The notes: generated by a model from the sequence alone, not told the origin. Positions 3,601 to 60,502 are shown, counted from the first letter of the stretch. The stretch: 64,000 nt of DNA from Adineta vaga (GCA_021613535.1 CP075493.1:15128001-15192000); one strand, 5' to 3'. Numbers and translations: made by a program.

Positions 3601-5227
3601 ATACAATAATACATTCAATCCTGCAGATCCAGATCAAAATCAGCTATCGTCGGACAATCAGGCTGGAGGCAATAACCAGTTCCTTCTCACAAATATTCTT
3701 CAAGCTATGACGACCTATATTATGGTTGTAACAACATATTATAATGGAGTCACTGGAAAATTTTCACTAATTGGACAGGGTCCTGATTCGATTAGTTTTT
3801 CACCAAGTAAGGAATATATTAAGTAAGAATTCAAGGTATAAGAAAACATTTTTTCGATTGAATGGGATATCTATCAAAAGAAGAATTTACTCAGTTTCAC
3901 AGAGAATGACGAATTGTTTCCATATTAAACGTTTTTTCATGATCATCGGTGACACCCACTCAACATTTTACACTTGCATTCAAGTATTACCTCTAGTCAA
4001 ATACTGGAAACCTCAAAGTCTAAATCCTGTCTCTCTAGACGTTTTCTTGAGTTAAACTATTAGAAGTACACATTTTATCTTTCTTTCCCTAGTCAACTCA
4101 TCAATGGTAAAATCGAAATACTCATCTGCTCTGACTGTAAATAGTCAGTCATATACTCGGGCCACTGCTTCGCCAGGATCAGTTTTTTATTATGAAGCTC
4201 TTGAGATCAGTGTGTCAACGACAGGAATTTATACTTTTTTAAGCGATAGTACCATGGATACGTTTGGCTATATATATAATAGTACTTGGAATCCTGTCGA
4301 TCCATATGAAAATCTACTGTCAATGGATGATGATACTGGAGGTAATGGGCAGTTCCTTCTCGCAAATGTTCTTCAAGCTATGACTACCTATATGGTGGTT
4401 CTATCAGCATATGATGAAAGGGTTACGGGACGCTTTTCACTGATTGGATACGGCCCAGATTCGATTAGTCTTGTTCGAGTTAATATAACTAGTAAGTACT
4501 GAAGCAATTCATATAGAGAATTTTCAGCGATTTAGATGGACTAACAGGGAGGTTTTGATCGTTTTCCGAGTCTTTTAATTGTTTTGCGATTGTGCGAAAT
4601 CAATATACTGTCGCTTGAGATTCAGCTTAGATATTATCAGTTCTATTTATTTAATATGAACACTATATTGTGATTACGTACAATTATTCTTAAACTCTTC
4701 CACTATGAGCGGTAGAAACGTGAAAAATTTGACGTTTTTGTTTCTGATTTTGCGACGTTCAATTAATAATGTAATAGAATGATCATCTTTTATTTCATTT
4801 TAATTCTAAAACACATGTTTCTTTTGTGTGACTAGCTAATTCATCGAAAGTGAAATCAATTTATTCATCAACTTTGACTACCAGGAGTCCGCAGTTTTGT
4901 CATAGACCTACTTGTCCAACAGCAACATACTTTTATCAACCCATTCAAGTTATCGTGTCCACAACTGGAACATATACGGTTTTATGCTCTAGCAATATGG
5001 ATTCAACAGGATATATATACAACAACACTTTCTATTCCTCGTTTCCAATCTTAAATCAATTTGCATCAGATGATGATAGTGGTGGTGGTCGCCAGTTTAT
5101 GTTCAGAGTTTTTCTTCAGACTGTAGGAAAGTATATTTTGATTGTAACAACATACAAACAAAATGCAACAGGATCATTTTCAATTAGGATCATTGGTGAC
5201 GGTCCTGTTAATTTTGTTAGTCCATAG
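628..5227 (+). CDS. 3' part of a multi-exon gene: Thr-rich linker exon plus five tandem ~130-aa PPC/DVUA0089-like beta-sandwich domain exons; 5' end not resolved
   Basis: Phase 1-1 exons with AG/GT borders at 628-714, 1281-1670, 2749-3138, 3423-3806 and 4093-4491; terminal exon 4836-5227 (TAG). Each domain repeats the pattern Y.(E/Q).I.I.V.TTG.YT..S.S..DT.G..YN..F.P......S.DD..GG..QF.....LQ....YILVVT.Y. Confidence 0.8.
2516..2564. repeat. Inverted telomere-like cassette (intronic), 13-bp perfect arms
   Basis: ATTTGAGGGTGTG-23 nt-CACACCCTCAAAT. Confidence 0.9.
3139..4092 (+). repeat. Recent tandem duplication (~670 bp exon+intron unit); introns 3139-3422 and 3807-4092 nearly identical
   Basis: By-eye comparison shows about 7 differences over ~285 bp of intron; this also explains the duplicated spurious ORFs 3073..3339 and 3771..4055. 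Confidence 0.95.
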
Positions 5228-8862: not shown

Positions 8863-9742
8863 ATGGATATTCATAATGAACAATCGATATCCGATATAAG
8901 TAAATGTACTAAATAAATCATCGTCAGTGATTGGAATTTTTATTTAGAATCTTGTGTAATTGAATCTGAGATTGAAAGACAAATATTTGAATATAAACGT
9001 GAAAATCCATCCATCGTTGGATGGGAAATTCGTAATCGTCTTTCGAAAGAAATGAATTGCAAGTTAGAAGACTTTCTAAGTGTATGTCATTTGATTAATT
9101 ATTCTGAAGAAAACTTTTCTATTCTTAATATATTTTCTCATTTCAGGTATTATCAATCAATGAAGTTTTAAAAAATCTTGATTCAACTGAAAATTCAAAT
9201 TCCAAAGATAAATATCAAATCAATAATACAGATCATGAACACACTCAAGATTCAGCAGGTAATAAAATATATTGTTTCGAAAATTACAGATATATTCACA
9301 ATTTTCAAATAGTCTGTAGAAGAAAATATGAGTTTCCTAAGTTAATTAACTCTTACGATAGTATTGATTTTTTCGATCATTAGAATATAACAAACCAATT
9401 ATACAAGATGATTTAAATGAAAATAATTTAGGAGAACGTGTCAAAGTACAAAGTAATTAAACATGATTTACACAAAAACAAATCGATGTTTTAGAACAAG
9501 GTATTTGTTTTCCATATGAAAATAAAAATGAGTAAATCCAATTTCTATATTAGTTTTTAATATTAAACATTATCCAGATTTATTTGAACGTGAAGAAGTT
9601 GCATTAGAACTCAATGTATCTGAACCAAGAATTCAAGTACAAAATTAATATTTTCTTTAGAAGAAATTTATTTATTTGTTTTTTTATATTAAAGATATGG
9701 TTTTATAATCGTCGAATGAAATATCGTGAATCTGGAAAGTAA
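8863..9742 (+). pseudogene. Pax-like gene with only the RED half of the paired domain plus a PRD-class homeodomain; two in-frame stops
   Basis: Exons 8863-8899, 8948-9081, 9147-9258, 9384-9500, 9554-9636, 9695-9742. Translation includes IFEYKRENPSIVGWEIRNRL...FLS/VLSINEVLKN and FTQKQIDVLEQ/VFNIKHYPDLFEREEVALELNVSEPRIQ/IWFYNRR, with the canonical PRD-class intron before WF. TAA at 9458-9460 and TGA at 9464-9466 are in frame. Confidence 0.85.
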
Positions 9743-50486: not shown

Positions 50487-51350
50487 ATGGTATTGTCTTT
50501 GGTAATTGTTATATGTATCGTTATTGTTATTGGGACTGGTAGTCTGTATTTACTGAAGTATTTCATAAGACATCGTCATTCTTATATGAATATAGAACAG
50601 TTTTGTGAATTGGCACATCAACATGAACAATGTAGTACTAATGATGAAGACGGAGTGACAAGTGTTATCGAAGAGATGTTCAATGAATCTCCATTTTACA
50701 AAGCAAATCATGTTAGATCAAATTTAGATTATATTCATTTATACAAATATCTTCGTGAATTTTGTTGTCAAAAATCTTTATATACAAACCGTCAAGGACC
50801 TGTCTGTCCATTTCTACCGCGTGCGTTCAAAGAACAATCGATTTATTTTTTTGATGATATTTACAGTGAAACGAAACAAGAATTAATTGAAATTGTTCGA
50901 CAATGTAGAAATGATTATCTTTCTGTTTTAAAACCAATTGAATTTGAAAACAGAAGTTTAATAGTTTATAAAACTTTGATTATTCTCATACGAAACACAT
51001 CAATATCACATGAAATAGTCGATCAAATACAAATGGAACTCAAATCAGAATTTATTTTAAAATATGGCCTTATGTTGGGTGAATTTCATTTATCATCAAA
51101 TTCATCTGCAATTAAAAACAAAGATTTTTATCCATTACGTACGAAAACACCACTCTTAGTTATACGACGTTTGGTTGCAAATGATATCATATTTTTAAAT
51201 CAAAAAGATAGATATTCCAAAGATATACGTTCAAAAATGATCAAAATGTACATTGATTTAGATAAAAATGGATTGTTACATTCAAGAAAGGATCATTATT
51301 TACGTACAGCACATGAACTTCTTCACGAATTGAATAACAATGATGAGTAA
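50487..51350 (+). CDS. DUF6875-like (bacterial-type) protein with N-terminal membrane anchor
   Basis: YLREFCC...RQGPVCPFLP, Q.ELKSEF..YGLMLGEFH...N.DFYPLRTKTPLLVIRRLV..D..FL match the motif string I recall for this family; intronless CDS. Confidence 0.6.
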   Translation: MVLSLVIVICIVIVIGTGSLYLLKYFIRHRHSYMNIEQFCELAHQHEQCSTNDEDGVTSVIEEMFNESPFYKANHVRSNLDYIHLYKYLREFCCQKSLYTNRQGPVCPFLPRAFKEQSIYFFDDIYSETKQELIEIVRQCRNDYLSVLKPIEFENRSLIVYKTLIILIRNTSISHEIVDQIQMELKSEFILKYGLMLGEFHLSSNSSAIKNKDFYPLRTKTPLLVIRRLVANDIIFLNQKDRYSKDIRSKMIKMYIDLDKNGLLHSRKDHYLRTAHELLHELNNNDE

Positions 51351-52202: not shown

Positions 52203-52974
52203 ATGATCATGATGAAAAATATCATTGGCAAAATTAGTTCGAACAGTTTACTGACGATTGGTATTTTTGTTCTTATTCTAAATTTAATACCGATTGTAGC
52301 AAGTGCAGATGCTTCTGGTGATGATGAAGGAAAAAATCTCAAGGCTAAACTTGCATCAACGGTAACTGAATTGGATTTGCAAGCTCTCTTAACCGATGAA
52401 CAGTTTGTGTTTGATTTTAATAAAACTACTGAGGGTGTCGCGTTAGGAGATGGTGGTCGAATCGTGGTTGCATCAGTAAGTTTGATGAATTATTCTATTT
52501 CGTTTCTATTCATTTTTATGCTTTTAGGCTGCAGTTTTTCCAGCTTTAATCAAACATGATATTGCCATGGCTGTAGGTTCTATTGAACCATGTGGATTAG
52601 TTCTACCGCATACTCATCGAGCTACTGAACTCGTTTATGTTTCTCAAGGCAAATTTGAAGCTGGTTTCATTCAAGAAAATGGAGGTCGTTTTATTAAGAA
52701 TGTCATCGTTGCTGGTCAAGTTGTTGTTTTTCCTGAAGGTTCAATTCATTTTGCACAAAATTTAAATTGTGAACCAGCTTTCTTTATTGCATCATTCAAT
52801 TCAGCTGATCCCGGGGTTCAAATAACAGCAGATAATGCTATTAAAGGTTTACCTGTTGATATTGTAGCAGCAAGTCTGGGAATTAGCATCAAAGCAGCAA
52901 AGGATTTAAGAGATTCGTTACCTGCAGTACCATCACTTGGATCGCAAGAATGTCGAAAAAAGTGTAAACTCTGA
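52203..52974 (+). CDS. Secreted germin/spherulin-like cupin (copy 1)
   Basis: Exons 52203-52475 and 52528-52974; signal peptide; FVFDF, FPAL, PCGLVLPHTHRATE, GFIQENG, FPEGSIH, FNSADPG. Confidence 0.9.
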
Positions 52975-53518
52975 TTTATATCGATTAATGAACTAAAAAA
53001 AGAATGATATTTTTCTTTTTTTCTTTTTTCTTTTTCGAAATAAACAATGCTGAAAAACTTAATGAAATCGTTTGCTTAGATTATGTTTAACCAAGTCTGA
53101 TACTGAGTGATAAAACAAGCATATGTTTCACGTATGATCATCAAGGGTCATTATTATTGATGCCCTTAGAAGACAAATATCTGAAGTGCTAATAATCTTT
53201 CAGCAGAGTATTGAGTTCGTTTTTAATGATATAGACAATAAATCTTTAAGTAATAAATCATAAAATTAATCCGAACATATAATCTATTTTATGATGATGA
53301 AAACACACTTGTATACATGGCATGGTACTTGAAAACATCTAAAGGTAGAATGTTTTATTTGTGAATATATAAAGAATATACGAAGAGTGGACTGATTATA
53401 CTTTCGAACATTGATCGGGTATGTGTGCTGTCAATAGCTATTTATTTACTTAAGAATTCCTAGAAAGAAATATCGTATTATTCGAATTTAGAATTGAACG
53501 AAATAGTTTACTCGTACA

Positions 53519-55516
53519 ATGAAATTTAACGCTGTGTCTGTATGTGATGAACAAGAAGATGGGCTGGAATTGCAAGACATGACAATGTTAACTAAACAAC
53601 GAAGATCATTTGTAAGACCAGTAGGATATAAACAATCGTAAGATTTGATATAATAATCTACAAGAAGAAAATACACTGGAATTATGTTGCTTATGTTTAT
53701 AGAGATTCACAAAAACGAAAACTTCTGGTCGTTGTGACCTTAATGTTGATCGTGGTGAGTGGCTTCGCGGTTTTATTCATTTCACGCCATTCAAATAAGG
53801 AAAATGTTGATGATCAAAACGGTAAGAAATTAACATTTATAGCATTTCTTAAAAATAAATCCCATTGCATTCATTACAGAAAATACAAATGAATGGGGTT
53901 TGGATGAAGATGTTTCGATGGACAATGGAACTCTTCGAGTGAAATCATATTCGGAATATGTCAGTAATATTCTGTTGTTCATGTATACATAAAAGGATTG
54001 TCTTGTTCAATGTAGCAACAGTCCAAAAGACCTGAAAAGGTTGGCTTCACGAATATATTTGTTCGTAAGCCGAACAAGGCTGGTAGTGGAAAATCATCAG
54101 CAGATCGAATTCGATTTCCAACTGCTCGTTATACTCGTCACAATTTTCGTATATCGCTTTAATCTATTTGATATTGCGATATAATCATGACTTTTTTTCT
54201 AGCTTTAAGAGGACAATTTATTAATTTACTTCCGCAAGTTCCGATTTATTTTGACCGACGTACTCGACAAACAATCATTTATTCACCAGCAGGTGGATGT
54301 GAGTAATTCTATTTGAGAAAGTTATTGATGATAATAGATTATTCGTTTCAGACTACATTTTACCACCTTTAATCAATTTCTATGGAGAGTTATTTTCCAT
54401 TGCGGAATTGATTGCATCGGGCTATGCCAGTTTAGTTAGTAGTGGAAGTCAACCAATCGGTCCAATCAATATGGCACCAATTTTTCAGCCAACACCAAGT
54501 GAGTTAGTCTCCTTCAAAATCTGTATTGCTATGTTTTAATAATTGTTAGTAATCGGTCATGGTATACCTCAGATCAATAGATTCACTGGAAGTTTTCGAG
54601 GTGGTTATCGAACAAACTATGGTCGATTTCCACTTCGCAAATATCCAGAGAAACGTGTCACCTTAGATTTCGATGATGAAACCGATGAAGAGGACAGTTA
54701 CGAATCGCCATCATATTCACGTGACAATTATAAAGCACCGTCATATTCTAACAAATACTACAAAAGACCATCATATTCACGTTTCAAGGATGATAAACCA
54801 CGGACGAATCAAAGTAATGTAGAGTATGCTATTATCACTGTTATTGTCATTGCGATTTTAGGTATTCCAAAAGTTGATAAAGCTGCACTTCAACTTGCAG
54901 TTACTGAACTTGATCGACAAGCTCTATTAACTGATGAACAATTTGTCTTCGATTATCGTAATGCTTGGACAGGAGTTGCCAGTGGAAAAGGTGGCCGTAT
55001 TACTCTTGCAACGGTATTATCAAAACATAAACTTGCTTTTTCGTCAGATAATTATTTTTGCTTTAGGCAAATAACTTTCCGGCTCTGATTGGTCGCGGTT
55101 CGGCCATGAGCATTGGAAATATTAAACCGTGTGGTTTCGTTCTACCACATTTACATCCACGCGCCGATGAACTTTTCTTCATGATTTCGGGTGAAATGCA
55201 AGCAGGTTTCATTCAAGAAAATGGAGGCCGATTCATTGTTAATACACTAGTTGCGGGTCAATGTATGGTGTTTCCTCAAGGTTCCATTCACTATGAACTA
55301 AACTTAAGCTGCAAGCCAGCTATATATCTAGCAGCTTTCAATTCAGCCGATCCAGGTTCACAAGCCGTACTCAATCGGCTTATCGGAGACTTACCATTAG
55401 ATATAGTTAGTGCAAGTCTTGGCGTTGATAGCAAAACCGTGAAAACTATCAACGCTACCATACCGCAAAATCCAGCACTCGGAACTGAAGATTGTCGAAA
55501 ACGGTGTGGTCTATAA
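53519..55516 (+). CDS. Type II membrane module fused to germin/spherulin-like cupin (copy 2)
   Basis: Exons 53519-53637, 53703-53821, 53880-53959, 54016-54148, 54203-54298, 54352-54498, 54550-54813, 54862-55013, 55067-55516, all GT-AG and in frame; cupin PCGFVLPHLHPRADE...FPQGSIH. Confidence 0.85.
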
Positions 55517-56032
55517 GACAGATGTATTTGAGAGAAAATTAACTCTTTTCTTTTTCGAAATAAATAATCATGAAAAAATAGTATTGTTCAATCTTCGCAA
55601 ATTCTTGAAAGATGCATATTTTTCTTTTGAATGCTTCCACTGTTTATCTGAAAAAGCACTCAGAGTTCAAACGTAAATGTCGGTCATCTTTGTCCTCTTT
55701 CTTTCGTTCGTTTTGTTGACTATGATAAAGGTTAAAACATAATTTCATTTTCTCAACAATTTATCTTTGATAATAAGCATGAAGACAGTGTATGACTATT
55801 AGTTATATTATCTAACATCATGTGATCAAGAAAGTAACAAAAAAGCACAAGACGCATTTTTCTTATCATTATTGTTTTACTTTAGATACTTTAAAAACGA
55901 ATCTTTTGTATAAAAGAAGTAATCAACATTTCATATTCAAAACATTGAAAAATTCGAAGGTAAAGATAGTGTTGAATTGTACTAGAATTCTGAATAAAAT
56001 TCACTTTTTGAATCACGTATCGACATCTAGAA

Positions 56033-58712
56033 ATGGAATTGAATTCTTTACCAGTACATAAAGAACAGCAAAAGAATGAGTACCATTTTCAAGATATGTC
56101 ATTGAATAATGAACAAGAACAAACTTTCATAAGAATAGAAAAACAAACAAATACACGAAATTCACGGTGAGTAATCAATAACAAACATAGGTTTTTCTTT
56201 CTATTGCTGATTACTCGTAGATCATGGTGGAAACACACTTCTGCATTACTAATGATAGTCGTTATAAGTAGCATGTTTATTCTTTGGATTAAACATGACA
56301 CAACAGTCTCAAACGATAGTGATACAAATCTTCAATTGAAATCATATTCAGAACGAGTAACTATCGACTACATTTGTTTTTCTTCGTTACATATTTCATT
56401 CGCACAGGATTCCGATTCATCAGTAACTCTTGGTTATATAAATATATACATTCATAAATCTCGTAGAAATGGTTATAAAAGATCATCGGAATTAATTCGA
56501 TTTCCGGTTGCTCATTTTCTTCGTCATCATTTTCGTTTGTTTTTCTTTTATTTTTCGAGATACTTTAATTCTATTTCTCTACATAGGACATAGTCATCAA
56601 TATCGAAGTATTAAACCATGGCCTAGTGTTTATGTCGATCGATATACTCAACATACATTGTTTACTTCAACGAAAGGTCGAGGTAAGTGTCTAATGAAAC
56701 ATTTATTTAGTTTTTTTTAATATAAACTATTCAATCATTTTAGCTTATCTTCTACCACCAATAATGAACGGTCATGATGAAGTCTTCTCAATAGCTGACC
56801 TCCTTCTGTCAGAAGATGTTAGTTTTGCTAGTAATGGTATTCCGCGAAGAGGTGATTTGGATTTAACACCGTATTTCAAATCAGTTCAATGTAAGTGAAT
56901 CATTGTTGCATTCGATTTTGTTGAGGAAAACTGCATTAAAAAGCTTTTTTATCTTGTATACTTCTTTATTTTAATAGTGATGGGACCGGGCATACCAAAA
57001 TTTAGTTATACCAAAGGAATTTTCATGGGTGGTGTTCGTACAAAATATGAATCATTTTCGAGATACGAAAATTCAGAAGATGAAGATTCATATAACAATG
57101 ATGATAAACCGCGAACACATTATACAAGTATTGAACTAAATTCTTAAAAGAATTGTTTTTCTAATTTTAGCTTTTTATTCCAATAGAACCATCAGCAAAA
57201 TCAACCGACAAGAAAACGTTCGTCAATTAACTTTTCTTCTTAAGAAATCCTATTTTTTATTTCTTTAGACTAAATTGTCCAATCGTAATCTTAGGTGCTG
57301 GAATGGGTGGAGCCCATAGTGCTTATCGTTTATCTCCAATTCATAAAGATAATGTTTGTATCTTTGAACGTGAAAATTATGTTGGCGGTCGTGCATATGA
57401 TCTTGATTATAAAGGAAATATTCCTGATGCCTATTCAACAACTCCAATATCACCATTAGGTTCTATACGATTTTATAAAGGTCAACCTGTGATGAAAGAA
57501 TTAATTGACGAATTGAATATAACCTATTATCCCTATGATTATCAAACACAATTGATAAAAGCACGTGGACAACTTTATACATCGTATAATGAAATGTGTA
57601 CGAAATCTTATGTTAATTTAACTTGTACTGATGATTCCGATGGAAATAATCCACCTGATCAATTATGGTTGAAATTATTAGATGCATATGAAACTAATCC
57701 GAAAGATTTATATAAATATGCTGATGTAAATGCATTTTGTCGTGCTTTATTTGGTGATGAAGCAACGGAATATTTAAGAGATTCATTTCGATTTCGTGCA
57801 GATTTTCATACAGATGTTTATTCATATTTAGAATATTTAAAACAAGAATGGAATCTTGTTGGAACAATTTATTATCCATTCAATGGTCTTTCACAAGTTG
57901 TTAAACGAATGATTTATAAATCAACAAAAATCAATAAAGCACGATTGTATTTAAATGAAGAAGTTCTTCGAATTGATGAAGTTTCGAATAGTTTTCTTAT
58001 TGAAACAACCAATTATAAAGTTTATTGTAAACAATTAATCATAACAATTCCACCAGCACATTGGACAAATATTCATGGAACAATTGCGAATGAGATTAAA
58101 TCAAGTAAACAATTTCAAGCAATTTTACCAGTAACAACAGTTGTAATTAATAATTATTGGTCGGAAAGATGGTGGGAAAAAACTTCCTTAACGGAGAAAA
58201 TTGTCGATCGAGCTTGGACAAGTCAAAATTGTATTAATTTTATAGAAATTCTATCGCGACATCCAGAAAAAATGAATCAAAATGTGACACGAAGTGTTTA
58301 TGATGACGGTCTATGTACCGATGTTTGGTCAGCTTTAGTTAATCGTTCATCAAATCGAGATTTAATTGATGAATTATTAAGAGGTTTAAGATCCATTTAT
58401 ACTGATGTAACAATTCCATCACCGAAAAAAACACAAGTTCAAATATGGCACGGTGCATGGCATTTACAAAGACGAAATAGTCAATTTACGAATAAAGATA
58501 TTGCTCGTTGGGCTTTGAGACCATTGAAAAAATTCAATAAAAACCAAATAACATTAGTAGGTGAAGCATATAATATTGATCGATCTGGTTGGAGTGATGG
58601 AGCAATTAAATCATCATTGATGTCACTTTATTCACAATTTAATTTTAAGAAATCTTGTTATCAAAATGATCAAGCTGTTGAAGGAGAATATTGTAGTAAT
58701 ATGTTTATTTAA
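56033..58712 (+). CDS. Type II membrane module fused to flavin amine oxidase (L-amino-acid-oxidase-like)
   Basis: Exons 56033-56166, 56221-56356, 56408-56534, 56587-56682, 56744-56890, 56978-57127, 57187-57217, 57269-58712. FAD motif IVILGAGMGGAHSAYRL, FERENYVGGR, LGSIRF, GLSQVV, GAWH, VGEAY...GWSDGA. Confidence 0.87.
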
Positions 58713-59204
58713 TGTACCTTTCTTATGTGTTTTTCTATCAAAATAAAATATTTTTCAAACATTCGACATCATCGTCATAATAAGTTACTAAAAAGCGTCT
58801 AGAAGGGTGTGTATGAGGACGGGGATGAATACAAGATGCCCACATCCATTCGGATATTATTAACGCTGTGGCAGGTCGACAACTACTAAAACGAAAGAAC
58901 GAACCATTGAGCAAACACTTATATAATTTGGTTTAAAATACATATCCAAATGTGCAAGATCAATTAAAACACATTGAACGTTTATCACATATGCGAACAA
59001 TTGACCGTCTTCCGTGTTTTTCTCTCTCAACAAGAATCACACATTTCATTTAAAAAAATACTTCACTTTGTTTTCTTTGGAAAACGCCTCATGAAATTTT
59101 GTCATTCTATATAAATATTCATTTGCAAGTTTTCTTTCGTTTAAATCAGATAATTAATTTCATTAGCCATATTATTCAAACTAATGACAATGAAAGTTGA
59201 AATT

Positions 59205-59488: not shown

Positions 59489-60502
59489 CTATTGTACACG
59501 ATGTGCTTTCGAGATCATTGGTAACATGTTGCCTTCAGCAGGACGCTGTATATTTTCTACATTTGTCGGTGCAATCTTTTTCCCTCTTGATACGAAACTA
59601 ATCAATTCTTGACGAAATTCAGTAAATGTAATTAGATAAATTGGAAAATTTAAAATAGGAAATGTGTATTGAATTATATCAATTGCATTGAGTATATGAC
59701 GACCCCATTCATTTGCAAAAAGAGTATCATAAAAGAAAGCGTAATTGATCGAAGATGGCGTACGGGTTATTATGAATAAAAAGCCCGTAGTTATAAGAGT
59801 GATTGAAACAGATCGATGACGAATTTGCGAATTTCTTACAGTAGTTGTGCGTCGTAATTGAGCAAGATGATAAATTGAAATAATATTGAACAAGATTATG
59901 AAGAATGATGGGATGAGATTATAAATACATAAATGTATTAGATGATATAGAGGAAAAATTCGATATAGCTTAGAATTCAGAATAATTCGTCCAGTAGTAT
60001 TTCTATAACAGACGAATAGTAAAAAGTGAAGATGGAAAAGAGAAAAGAATCCGATGAGACAACCAATAATAAATAAAACATTTTTTGATCGATTAAACCA
60101 AGTATTAGGATTTACACGACTTAAAACTAAATATCGATCAAAACAAATCAAAACATGTAACCATGCTAAAATATGAAGTGTAAAATAATTGAAAAATAAA
60201 GCGAATTTACATGATGCAACTGTATATGAAGCATATAATGTAAATCCATGAACAATACTAAAATAATTATCTAAAGTCCATCCATATAATCCAAGAAAAT
60301 CGATCATTGCAATTGCACGCATATAATGAATCGTTGGACGGACTTGAGTATTTCGAAATTTTGATTGACATAAAATAACAAATGTTAAGAGATTAAATAT
60401 TGTACCAATGATGACCATTGATAAGGAATAATATCCTGCAAAAGTTATATCAGTTGAAGATGAATATATATTTGTATTATTTGAATTATTGGTAGCTGTC
60501 AT
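59489..60502 (-). CDS. Rhodopsin-like (class A) GPCR
   Basis: 7 TM segments, GTIFNLLTF, CFDRY, NLIPSF, NFPIY...EFRQEL. Confidence 0.88.
   Translation of the reverse strand: MTATNNSNNTNIYSSSTDITFAGYYSLSMVIIGTIFNLLTFVILCQSKFRNTQVRPTIHYMRAIAMIDFLGLYGWTLDNYFSIVHGFTLYASYTVASCKFALFFNYFTLHILAWLHVLICFDRYLVLSRVNPNTWFNRSKNVLFIIGCLIGFFSLFHLHFLLFVCYRNTTGRIILNSKLYRIFPLYHLIHLCIYNLIPSFFIILFNIISIYHLAQLRRTTTVRNSQIRHRSVSITLITTGFLFIITRTPSSINYAFFYDTLFANEWGRHILNAIDIIQYTFPILNFPIYLITFTEFRQELISFVSRGKKIAPTNVENIQRPAEGNMLPMISKAHRVQ

Follow-up and report, generated by a model that had tools for sequence, protein, structure and literature searches.

A putative membrane-anchor cassette spliced onto unrelated enzymes in the bdelloid rotifer Adineta vaga

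Bdelloid rotifers carry many genes from bacteria and fungi, and to our knowledge it is largely unexplained how such acquired genes come to be expressed, targeted and made useful in an animal cell. This question is raised by a 64,000-nucleotide (nt) stretch of the Adineta vaga genome (positions 15128001-15192000 of contig C1, in an assembly of 100.8 Mb and six contigs; hereafter the window). Two adjacent plus-strand genes within it, gene A (53519-55516) and gene B (56033-58712), end in a cupin and a flavin-dependent oxidase respectively, and begin with what a reading made from the DNA alone (the sequence-only reading) had taken to be one and the same intron-rich module. What is this shared N-terminus, how widely is it used, and what might it do for the enzymes that it precedes? 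Our analysis places both genes in a bdelloid multigene family whose members have a conserved, intron-rich 5' cassette spliced to unrelated 3' cargo sequence that is intron-poor or intronless.

Both splice models were built by hand from GT-AG sites and reading frames in a window of 32% GC, and in these manual models all introns of the two genes are GT-AG and 48-87 nt long. The nine exons of gene A encode a product of 519 residues. Its module, which is supported by the GT-AG model, by transcript joints and by homology, occupies exons 1-7 (53519-53637, 53703-53821, 53880-53959, 54016-54148, 54203-54298, 54352-54498 and 54550-54813), and these lay out a predicted cytosolic tail, a signal-anchor helix in exon 2, a core in exons 4-7 and an acidic, tyrosine-rich tail ending in DDKPRT; the cupin follows in exons 8 and 9 (54862-55013 and 55067-55516). 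Gene B has eight coding exons and a product of 754 residues. An exon of its 5' untranslated region (UTR; 55894-55959, the minimum extent in contigs) and a UTR intron (55960-56030, with GT at 55960 and AG at 56029-56030 as read in the sequence) precede module exons 1-6 (56031, with the ATG at 56033, to 56166; then 56221-56356, 56408-56534, 56587-56682, 56744-56890 and 56978-57127), which likewise encode a predicted cytosolic tail, the signal-anchor helix and the core before closing with an acidic stretch whose last residues are DDKPRT. Module and cargo are linked by a 31-nt micro-exon (57187-57217), supported by the reading frame and by RNA contigs, and the oxidase is then encoded in a single exon (57269-58712). 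The micro-exon is needed because without it the strand that binds flavin adenine dinucleotide (FAD) and its GxGxxG motif lose their frame. The joined A and B proteins were used only for translation, pairwise BLASTP and the tree described below; database, fold and complex searches used single exons or annotated relatives.

When the two proteins were compared by BLASTP with compositional adjustment, they aligned at 31% identity over 300 columns (A 1-296, B 1-266; 140 bits, E 1e-39), giving a homologous N-terminal region of some 270-300 residues, and the same comparison found no similarity between their C-terminal parts. The homologous introns have matching phases (2, then 0, 1, 1, 1, 1), with one extra gene A intron (53822-53879) dividing a region that is a single exon in gene B, and two exon pairs are identical in length (54203-54298 and 56587-56682, both 96 nt; 54352-54498 and 56744-56890, both 147 nt). 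The sequence-only reading had claimed N-termini homologous segment by segment, matching intron phases, exact agreement in length of these two exon pairs and wholly different C-terminal cargos, and all of this was borne out, the cargos falling into Cupin_1 and Amino_oxidase in Pfam; the alignment on which the claim depended also stayed significant after correction for composition. The tail motif L-E-L-Q-D-M and its variants occur in gene A, gene B and some relatives. The two modules are not sisters: the core exon of gene A reaches 81% identity with a copy 207 kb away, against only 38% with the core exon of gene B. Pfam returned no match at E<=1 in any module exon of either gene.

We compared contigs of four public runs with positions 53400-58800 and found spliced contigs in three runs from two studies. 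Since exact intron removal arises only from spliced RNA, spliced transcripts are present. Exact GT..AG joints in these contigs cover five of the eight introns of gene A (53637|53703, 54148|54203, 54298|54352, 54813|54862 and 55012|55066), all introns of gene B (runs X1, X8 and X10) and the gene B UTR intron (55957->56029, cut +2, in X8 and X10). The gene A introns after 53821, 53959 and 54498 are not among the joints listed and are placed on their GT-AG ends, the reading frame and conservation across the family, so that the two proposed splice models are confirmed in full for gene B and in part for gene A. A contig of 498 nt (54630-54813|54862-55012|55066-55228) leads from gene A exon 7 through exons 8 and 9, and hence from the module into the cupin. 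Another, of 1451 nt, carries the end of gene B exon 6 and the micro-exon (47 extra letters at its head) and then 57269-58672, passing from the module into the oxidase; the micro-exon is additionally marked by loose contig ends at 57127 and 57187 and by the joint 57217|57269. Both module-cargo fusions exist in processed transcripts, and separate transcription of module and catalytic exons, which had been named as fatal to the proposal, is contradicted for both genes by the contigs that join the two.

The gene A intron between module and cupin (54814-54861, 48 nt) is in frame and free of stops, and its retention would add a hydrophobic stretch of 16 residues; in contigs from two runs it was seen only in spliced form. 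Contigs of run X1 differ from the window at around 30 single positions, and runs X8 and X10 also hold contigs identical to the window; the differences are consistent with a second allele or strain and not with editing.

The cargo of gene A matches Pfam Cupin_1 (E 9.4e-23, 80.9 bits against a cut-off of 22), and its best solved relative in the PDB is barley oxalate oxidase (1e-12). Germins are recognised by the metal-binding motifs HxH...E and G(x)5PxG(x)2H(x)3N. Both are intact in the exon 9 translation (H-L-H-P-R-A-D-E and G-Q-C-M-V-F-P-Q-G-S-I-H-Y-E-L-N), so that gene A resembles the germin and oxalate oxidase cupins in Pfam membership and in both metal motifs, and its cargo is probably a germin-like cupin of the manganese oxalate oxidase or superoxide dismutase type. 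The neighbouring plus-strand gene cupin-1 (52203-52475 and 52528-52974; Pfam Cupin_1, 4.5e-24) is a tandem paralogue of this cargo, with 55-62% identity and an intron at the same position and phase. Its N-terminus is hydrophobic and signal-like only, without the module; that the cupin also exists free of the module had been seen correctly.

Gene B's cargo matches Pfam Amino_oxidase (1.4e-11) and NAD_binding_8 (7.5e-07) and shares with flavin amine oxidases both their Pfam membership and the GxGxxG FAD-binding fold; the FAD motif itself, I-L-G-A-G-M-G-G, is in frame only with the RNA-supported micro-exon. Its nearest non-rotifer relatives are proteins of Myxococcales, Sandaracinaceae and Chitinophagaceae (35-38% identity), and it is weakly similar to the characterised monoamine oxidases (MAO) and L-amino-acid oxidases (LAAO), with PDB matches of 5e-7 to 1e-5 that are mostly confined to the FAD-binding N-terminus. 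On these matches we class it as a bacterial-type flavin amine oxidase and assign no substrate class. The suggestion that it is an L-amino-acid oxidase of aplysianin or achacin type was not upheld, given that its nearest relatives outside rotifers are bacterial and the structural matches to LAAO and MAO weak. If the two assignments are right, then the cargos of genes A and B would both produce H2O2. A protein homologue search with the oxidase exon found no module-bearing proteins among its homologues. Among paralogues of the oxidase (P0007, P0003 and P0006) a different N-terminal extension of around 200 residues is seen, comprising a transmembrane helix and an unrecognised region, and P0007 (I4U23_004052) sits on the same A. 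vaga contig as gene B; the Rotaria copies have a short anchor only. Because the module, the other extension and the short anchor are all seen, the same foreign enzyme family carries at least three kinds of N-terminus. We know of no other case in which the germin/oxalate oxidase or flavin amine oxidase families bear this N-terminal cassette.

The module extends well beyond these two genes. The 48-residue core exon of gene A (54354-54497) has matches at 28 genomic places on five of the six contigs, which leaves 26 further copies besides genes A and B, and exon 4 of gene A has matches at 16. At all 24 loci that were retrieved for inspection the conserved exons stand in the same order. Exon 6 is 147 nt long, of phase 1-1 and flanked by AG/GT in nearly all 28 copies, and the copies examined have a hydrophobic-helix frame upstream of the core, with a P-Q-L-R-S-Y-like motif in many of them. 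No cupin or amine oxidase cargo lies downstream at the other retrieved loci. Long frames directly downstream match, in Pfam, SBP_bac_3, Abhydrolase_1 with TAP-like, FG-GAP_3 (twice), multicopper oxidase (twice), Abhydrolase_10, NHL repeats, PA with Peptidase_M28 and DyP peroxidase; others encode threonine-rich, mucin-like sequence, and several have no Pfam match. The cargos are typically single open frames of 300-800 codons, and the module has 6-7 introns in about 1.1 kb. At one locus (L028) the last module exon (exon 7) and an FG-GAP cargo form one open frame, which amounts to a fusion without splicing. This FG-GAP cargo is of bacterial type, in that a search with the L028 module and cargo together was dominated by bacterial VCBS repeats; that search returned no module protein, the VCBS repeats swamping it. 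In raw counts, the terminal quarter of a contig holds 22 of the 28 module loci, and contig C4 holds none. Foreign genes in bdelloids have a known subtelomeric bias, which the terminal position of the module loci fits.

Several individual loci deserve a brief description. At L038 (C5:13467809-13477808) two secreted-type members, a form introduced below, lie 4.4 kb apart on the minus strand with identical core exons (4858-5001 and 9298-9441), which looks like a recent tandem duplication. At L045 (4858-5001; C1, around 11.39 Mb) the core exon as framed has two in-frame stops, and the NCBI model P0308 nevertheless joins a module to MORN repeats; the copy may be decaying, or the gene model wrongly joined. 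At L049 (961-1530; C1, around 14.092 Mb) the linker between module and DyP peroxidase is a long acidic repeat of E-E-Q-E-A type instead of the usual threonine-rich linker.

A profile of the core exon (48 columns) was then searched against 1.84 billion representatives, giving 135 proteins at E<=1e-3 and 87 at E<=1e-10, many of which are exon-sized fragments. The long matches are independently made NCBI gene models of A. vaga, A. steineri and A. ricciae, in which the module precedes NHL, Peptidase_S8, Pro-kumamolisin/S53, Abhydrolase_1, three SBP_bac_3 domains, PA-M28, an aspartic peptidase (A1), multicopper oxidase, GMC oxidoreductase or MORN repeats. One cluster member is named a lytic cellulose monooxygenase (LPMO) by its source annotation only. 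The entry P0329, annotated as FAD-binding and placed in a module cluster, has no module and was dropped from the cargo list. In the annotated fusion proteins no Pfam family covers the module even at E<=1. The search for the module and its partners, which the sequence-only reading had proposed, gave 28 genomic copies plus the Adineta gene models, with many different cargos. Of its central idea, a reusable module displaying possibly foreign redox enzymes, the part that stands is a reusable and unrecognised module spliced to unrelated and partly foreign enzymes; the restriction to redox cargo fails, as peptidases, hydrolases, a solute-binding domain and propeller repeats are carried too.

A tree of the core separates an anchored clade of 24 rows, including genes A and B, from a secreted clade of 12 rows, each with 100/100 support. 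Anchored members consist of a cytosolic tail, one helix, the core, an acidic tyrosine-rich stretch, a basic or threonine-rich linker and the cargo. Secreted members, of some 250-430 residues, open with a signal-peptide-like N-terminus and contain, besides low-complexity sequence in which N, D, Y, G and S abound, only the core; among them are proteins of Rotaria socialis and an old entry from a telomeric clone of A. vaga (B3G3W6/ACD88937). The anchored form has so far been seen only in Adineta. Within the anchored clade, modules with S8, NHL and multicopper oxidase cargos group tightly together, and the sister of one S53 module carries an alpha/beta hydrolase; the S53 cargo class is also found on distant modules. 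Because close modules differ in cargo and the same cargo (S53) sits on distant modules, cargo has been exchanged repeatedly. Conserved intron positions and phases, unrelated partners and an incongruent module tree together mark this as an exon-shuffled mobile module.

What kind of protein the cassette encodes was addressed by prediction. A count of hydrophobicity and charge places one transmembrane helix within residues 30-81 (36-60 in most) in 25 of the 28 full-length members, and the N-terminal side of that helix is the richer in lysine and arginine (K+R) in 24 of the 25, the two sides being equal in the remaining one. This pattern points to a type II (N-in) signal anchor, with the C-terminus lumenal or outside. 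For the core, two AlphaFold2 models were made, one from an alignment with an anchored member as its first row and one from an alignment with a secreted member in that place. They gave a mean predicted local distance difference test (pLDDT) score of 78 and 77 and a predicted template modelling score (pTM) of 0.70, and show the same order of strands plus one helix, making the core a predicted domain of about 150 residues that is mostly beta. Both models place the conserved hydrophobic sequence of exon 6, and likewise the basic sequence of exon 4, inside the folded domain. Accordingly neither of two other assignments was retained: the exon 6 stretch as a second transmembrane helix, as it is placed within the fold at pLDDT >90 in both models, and the basic R-F-R-F-P-V-A-R-Y as a convertase site, as it forms a beta strand of the core. 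A homodimer prediction for the core scored 0.00, which speaks neither for nor against oligomerisation.

Searches for a relative of the core brought no meaningful match. A profile of 34 core sequences had no match in the PDB at E<=10 (hmmsearch); Foldseek with the two models against the PDB reached a best E of 0.05 and 1.8; VIA-align against 48,161 PDB representatives reached a best Z of 2.7 and 2.9; and in the ESM Atlas the shape search gave a template modelling score of <=0.35. The ESM Atlas feature search, with all scores <0.9, speaks neither for nor against a relative. A match to a described domain, which would have spoken against the novelty of the module, was sought in Pfam, PDB and fold searches, and none was found; nor did we find a description of the module within the literature searched. 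On these models the core would be a domain without a known family or fold, an assignment that is provisional because the core alignments are shallow (31-34 rows).

Taken together, these data make it likely, in our view, that the module works as a portable cassette, bringing its cargo into the secretory pathway and tethering it to a membrane, and that it has been spliced repeatedly onto acquired enzymes. Its parts would be a cytosolic tail of around 40-60 residues; one signal-anchor helix with a K+R excess on its N-terminal side, predicted as type II; the mostly beta domain of around 150 residues with no known relative; and the acidic tyrosine-rich stretch followed by a basic or threonine-rich linker. 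The cassette would provide a promoter, a start codon, entry to the endoplasmic reticulum and a membrane tether with a stalk, such that secreted-type enzymes and binding domains, many of them of bacterial or fungal origin and without a eukaryotic targeting signal, could be presented on the side of a membrane that faces the lumen or the outside. Gene A would display a germin-like cupin in this way, and gene B a bacterial-type flavin amine oxidase. As for the site of display, a digestive or otherwise exposed surface is favoured because the cargo set resembles a microbial degradative secretome, with laccase, DyP peroxidase, GMC oxidase, the source-named LPMO, sedolisins, aspartic and subtilisin proteases and lipase-like hydrolases. 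That the cupin and the oxidase share one site, as had been proposed, we only infer, because their modules are not sisters. None of the results points to the cuticle, eggshell or antimicrobial setting that the sequence-only reading had suggested.

Several points weigh against the portable-cassette reading. That the core also occurs by itself, in the secreted clade, shows it to have an independent function, and a pure anchor leaves this unexplained. Topology, localisation and activity are computational predictions, and the public runs were only guessed to be RNA. Foreign origin was examined for two cargos only, the oxidase and FG-GAP. The annotated MORN cargo (P0308) is normally a cytosolic domain, and its genomic copy has stops in the core exon. 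Finally, anchored fusions were not found in Rotaria or other bdelloids, with a sampling that consisted of the 48-column profile and one word-based search.

One way of giving the core a function would be to see it as a dedicated domestication adaptor with which Adineta plugs newly acquired foreign secreted enzymes, each furnished with the same cassette, into one shared, membrane-bound degradative or oxidative assembly, held together by contacts between cores or between core and secreted paralogue. Such an assembly would bring H2O2 producers (cupin, amine oxidase and GMC oxidase) beside H2O2 users (DyP peroxidase and the source-named LPMO), laccases and peptidases. We offer this as a speculative extension with a rather low chance of being correct. 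If it is, then it would represent an animal-built, membrane-tethered counterpart of the fungal secretome, made from horizontally transferred parts.

The secreted clade and the tyrosine-rich linkers may also leave room for a matrix or cross-linking role of the kind put forward in the sequence-only reading. In that case the core would assemble or cross-link an extracellular structure (eggshell, trophi or surface coat), with fusions adding cross-linking enzymes and remodelling proteases, and with the tyrosine-rich stretches as dityrosine substrates. The sister clade, in which a signal peptide and core are combined with low-complexity sequence rich in G, Y, N, D and S, has a composition typical of structural proteins; acidic tyrosine-rich segments follow the core in nearly all members; and the cargos include H2O2 producers (cupin, amine oxidase and GMC) together with DyP peroxidase and laccases. 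However, the anchored members retain a transmembrane helix that appears uncleaved, and the S53, A1 and M28 peptidases, alpha/beta hydrolases and SBP_bac_3 are ill-suited to cross-linking, and we consider this role unlikely for the family.

Similarly improbable is that the cassette targets its cargos to endolysosomes or food vacuoles, with a sorting signal in the tail sending acid hydrolases and H2O2-making oxidases to digestive vacuoles, where ingested microbes would be killed and digested. Whilst the conserved tail motif in genes A, B and some relatives would suit this idea, as would the acid peptidase families S53 and A1 and the H2O2 producers among the cargos, the motif is present in a minority of members only and fits no sorting consensus that could be tested, and the laccase, solute-binding and FG-GAP/NHL cargos are atypical of lysosomes.

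A cleavable pro-region, in which the module would tether or inactivate the enzymes until a protease cut in the basic stretch near DDKPRT frees a soluble cargo, is in our estimation quite improbable. Many members do have a basic, proline-rich stretch between acidic tail and cargo, and a K-P-[RKY]-x-T motif recurs, but no conserved dibasic convertase site aligns across members, the RFRFPVARY stretch belongs to the folded core as described above, and several cargos bring an activation domain of their own. Shedding of this kind would in any case be an addition to the anchor reading rather than an alternative to it. The pro-domain role floated in the sequence-only reading is unlikely, since the module precedes at least 15 unrelated types of cargo and some of these bring a pro-domain with them (the Pro-kumamolisin activation domain). 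As for an artefact, with similarity arising by chance or composition or with fusions that are errors of annotation or assembly, the AT-rich window, the partly low-complexity module and some truncated or intron-retaining database gene models might invite the thought, but it has next to no chance of being right and is already refuted by the composition-adjusted BLASTP and the exact spliced joints in three runs of two studies, and it also has against it the 87 library matches below 1e-10 and the splicing-free fusion at L028.

How does the portable cassette compare with known systems? One parallel is offered by type II ectoenzymes anchored in the membrane and raised on a juxtamembrane stalk, among them the brush-border hydrolases of vertebrates and the SEA-domain type II transmembrane serine proteases. 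Like the cassette proteins, these combine a short N-terminus in the cytosol and one signal-anchor helix with a juxtamembrane domain, a Ser/Thr-rich linker and an extracellular catalytic domain. The juxtamembrane domain of the cassette differs in that no resemblance to SEA, or to anything in Pfam or PDB, was detected, and, unlike in these ectoenzymes, one rotifer cassette is shared by at least 15 unrelated families of cargo, many of which are of bacterial or fungal type. The chromatophore transit peptide of Paulinella (crTP, around 200 residues) and the conserved N-termini of the RXLR/CRN effectors of oomycetes, portable targeting modules gained through exon shuffling, offer a second comparison, since here too a long, conserved, lineage-specific N-terminal module stands before unrelated proteins, horizontally acquired ones included, and module and cargo evolve as separable units. 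They differ from the cassette in sequence, in organism and in predicted topology, the cassette being a membrane anchor and not an import signal; moreover, the cassette core has a stand-alone secreted version, and removal of the cassette is not indicated.

If the portable-cassette reading is right, then a resident, intron-rich 5' cassette spliced repeatedly onto intron-poor foreign enzyme genes would be a concrete and testable route of domestication. Irrespective of its function, the module defines a new lineage-specific protein domain, with two structure models and, provisionally, no known fold, and the approximately 28 loci in one genome should allow cargo swapping to be dated and breakpoints to be reconstructed. 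Should the enzymes sit together, they would make up a membrane-anchored oxidative and hydrolytic toolkit relevant to bdelloid feeding or defence.

Two further frames flank the loci described here. On the minus strand, 59489-60502 is an intronless frame of 337 residues with several hydrophobic stretches and the look of a seven-transmembrane receptor, and on the plus strand, 50487-51350 is a frame of 287 residues with a hydrophobic helix at its N-terminus.

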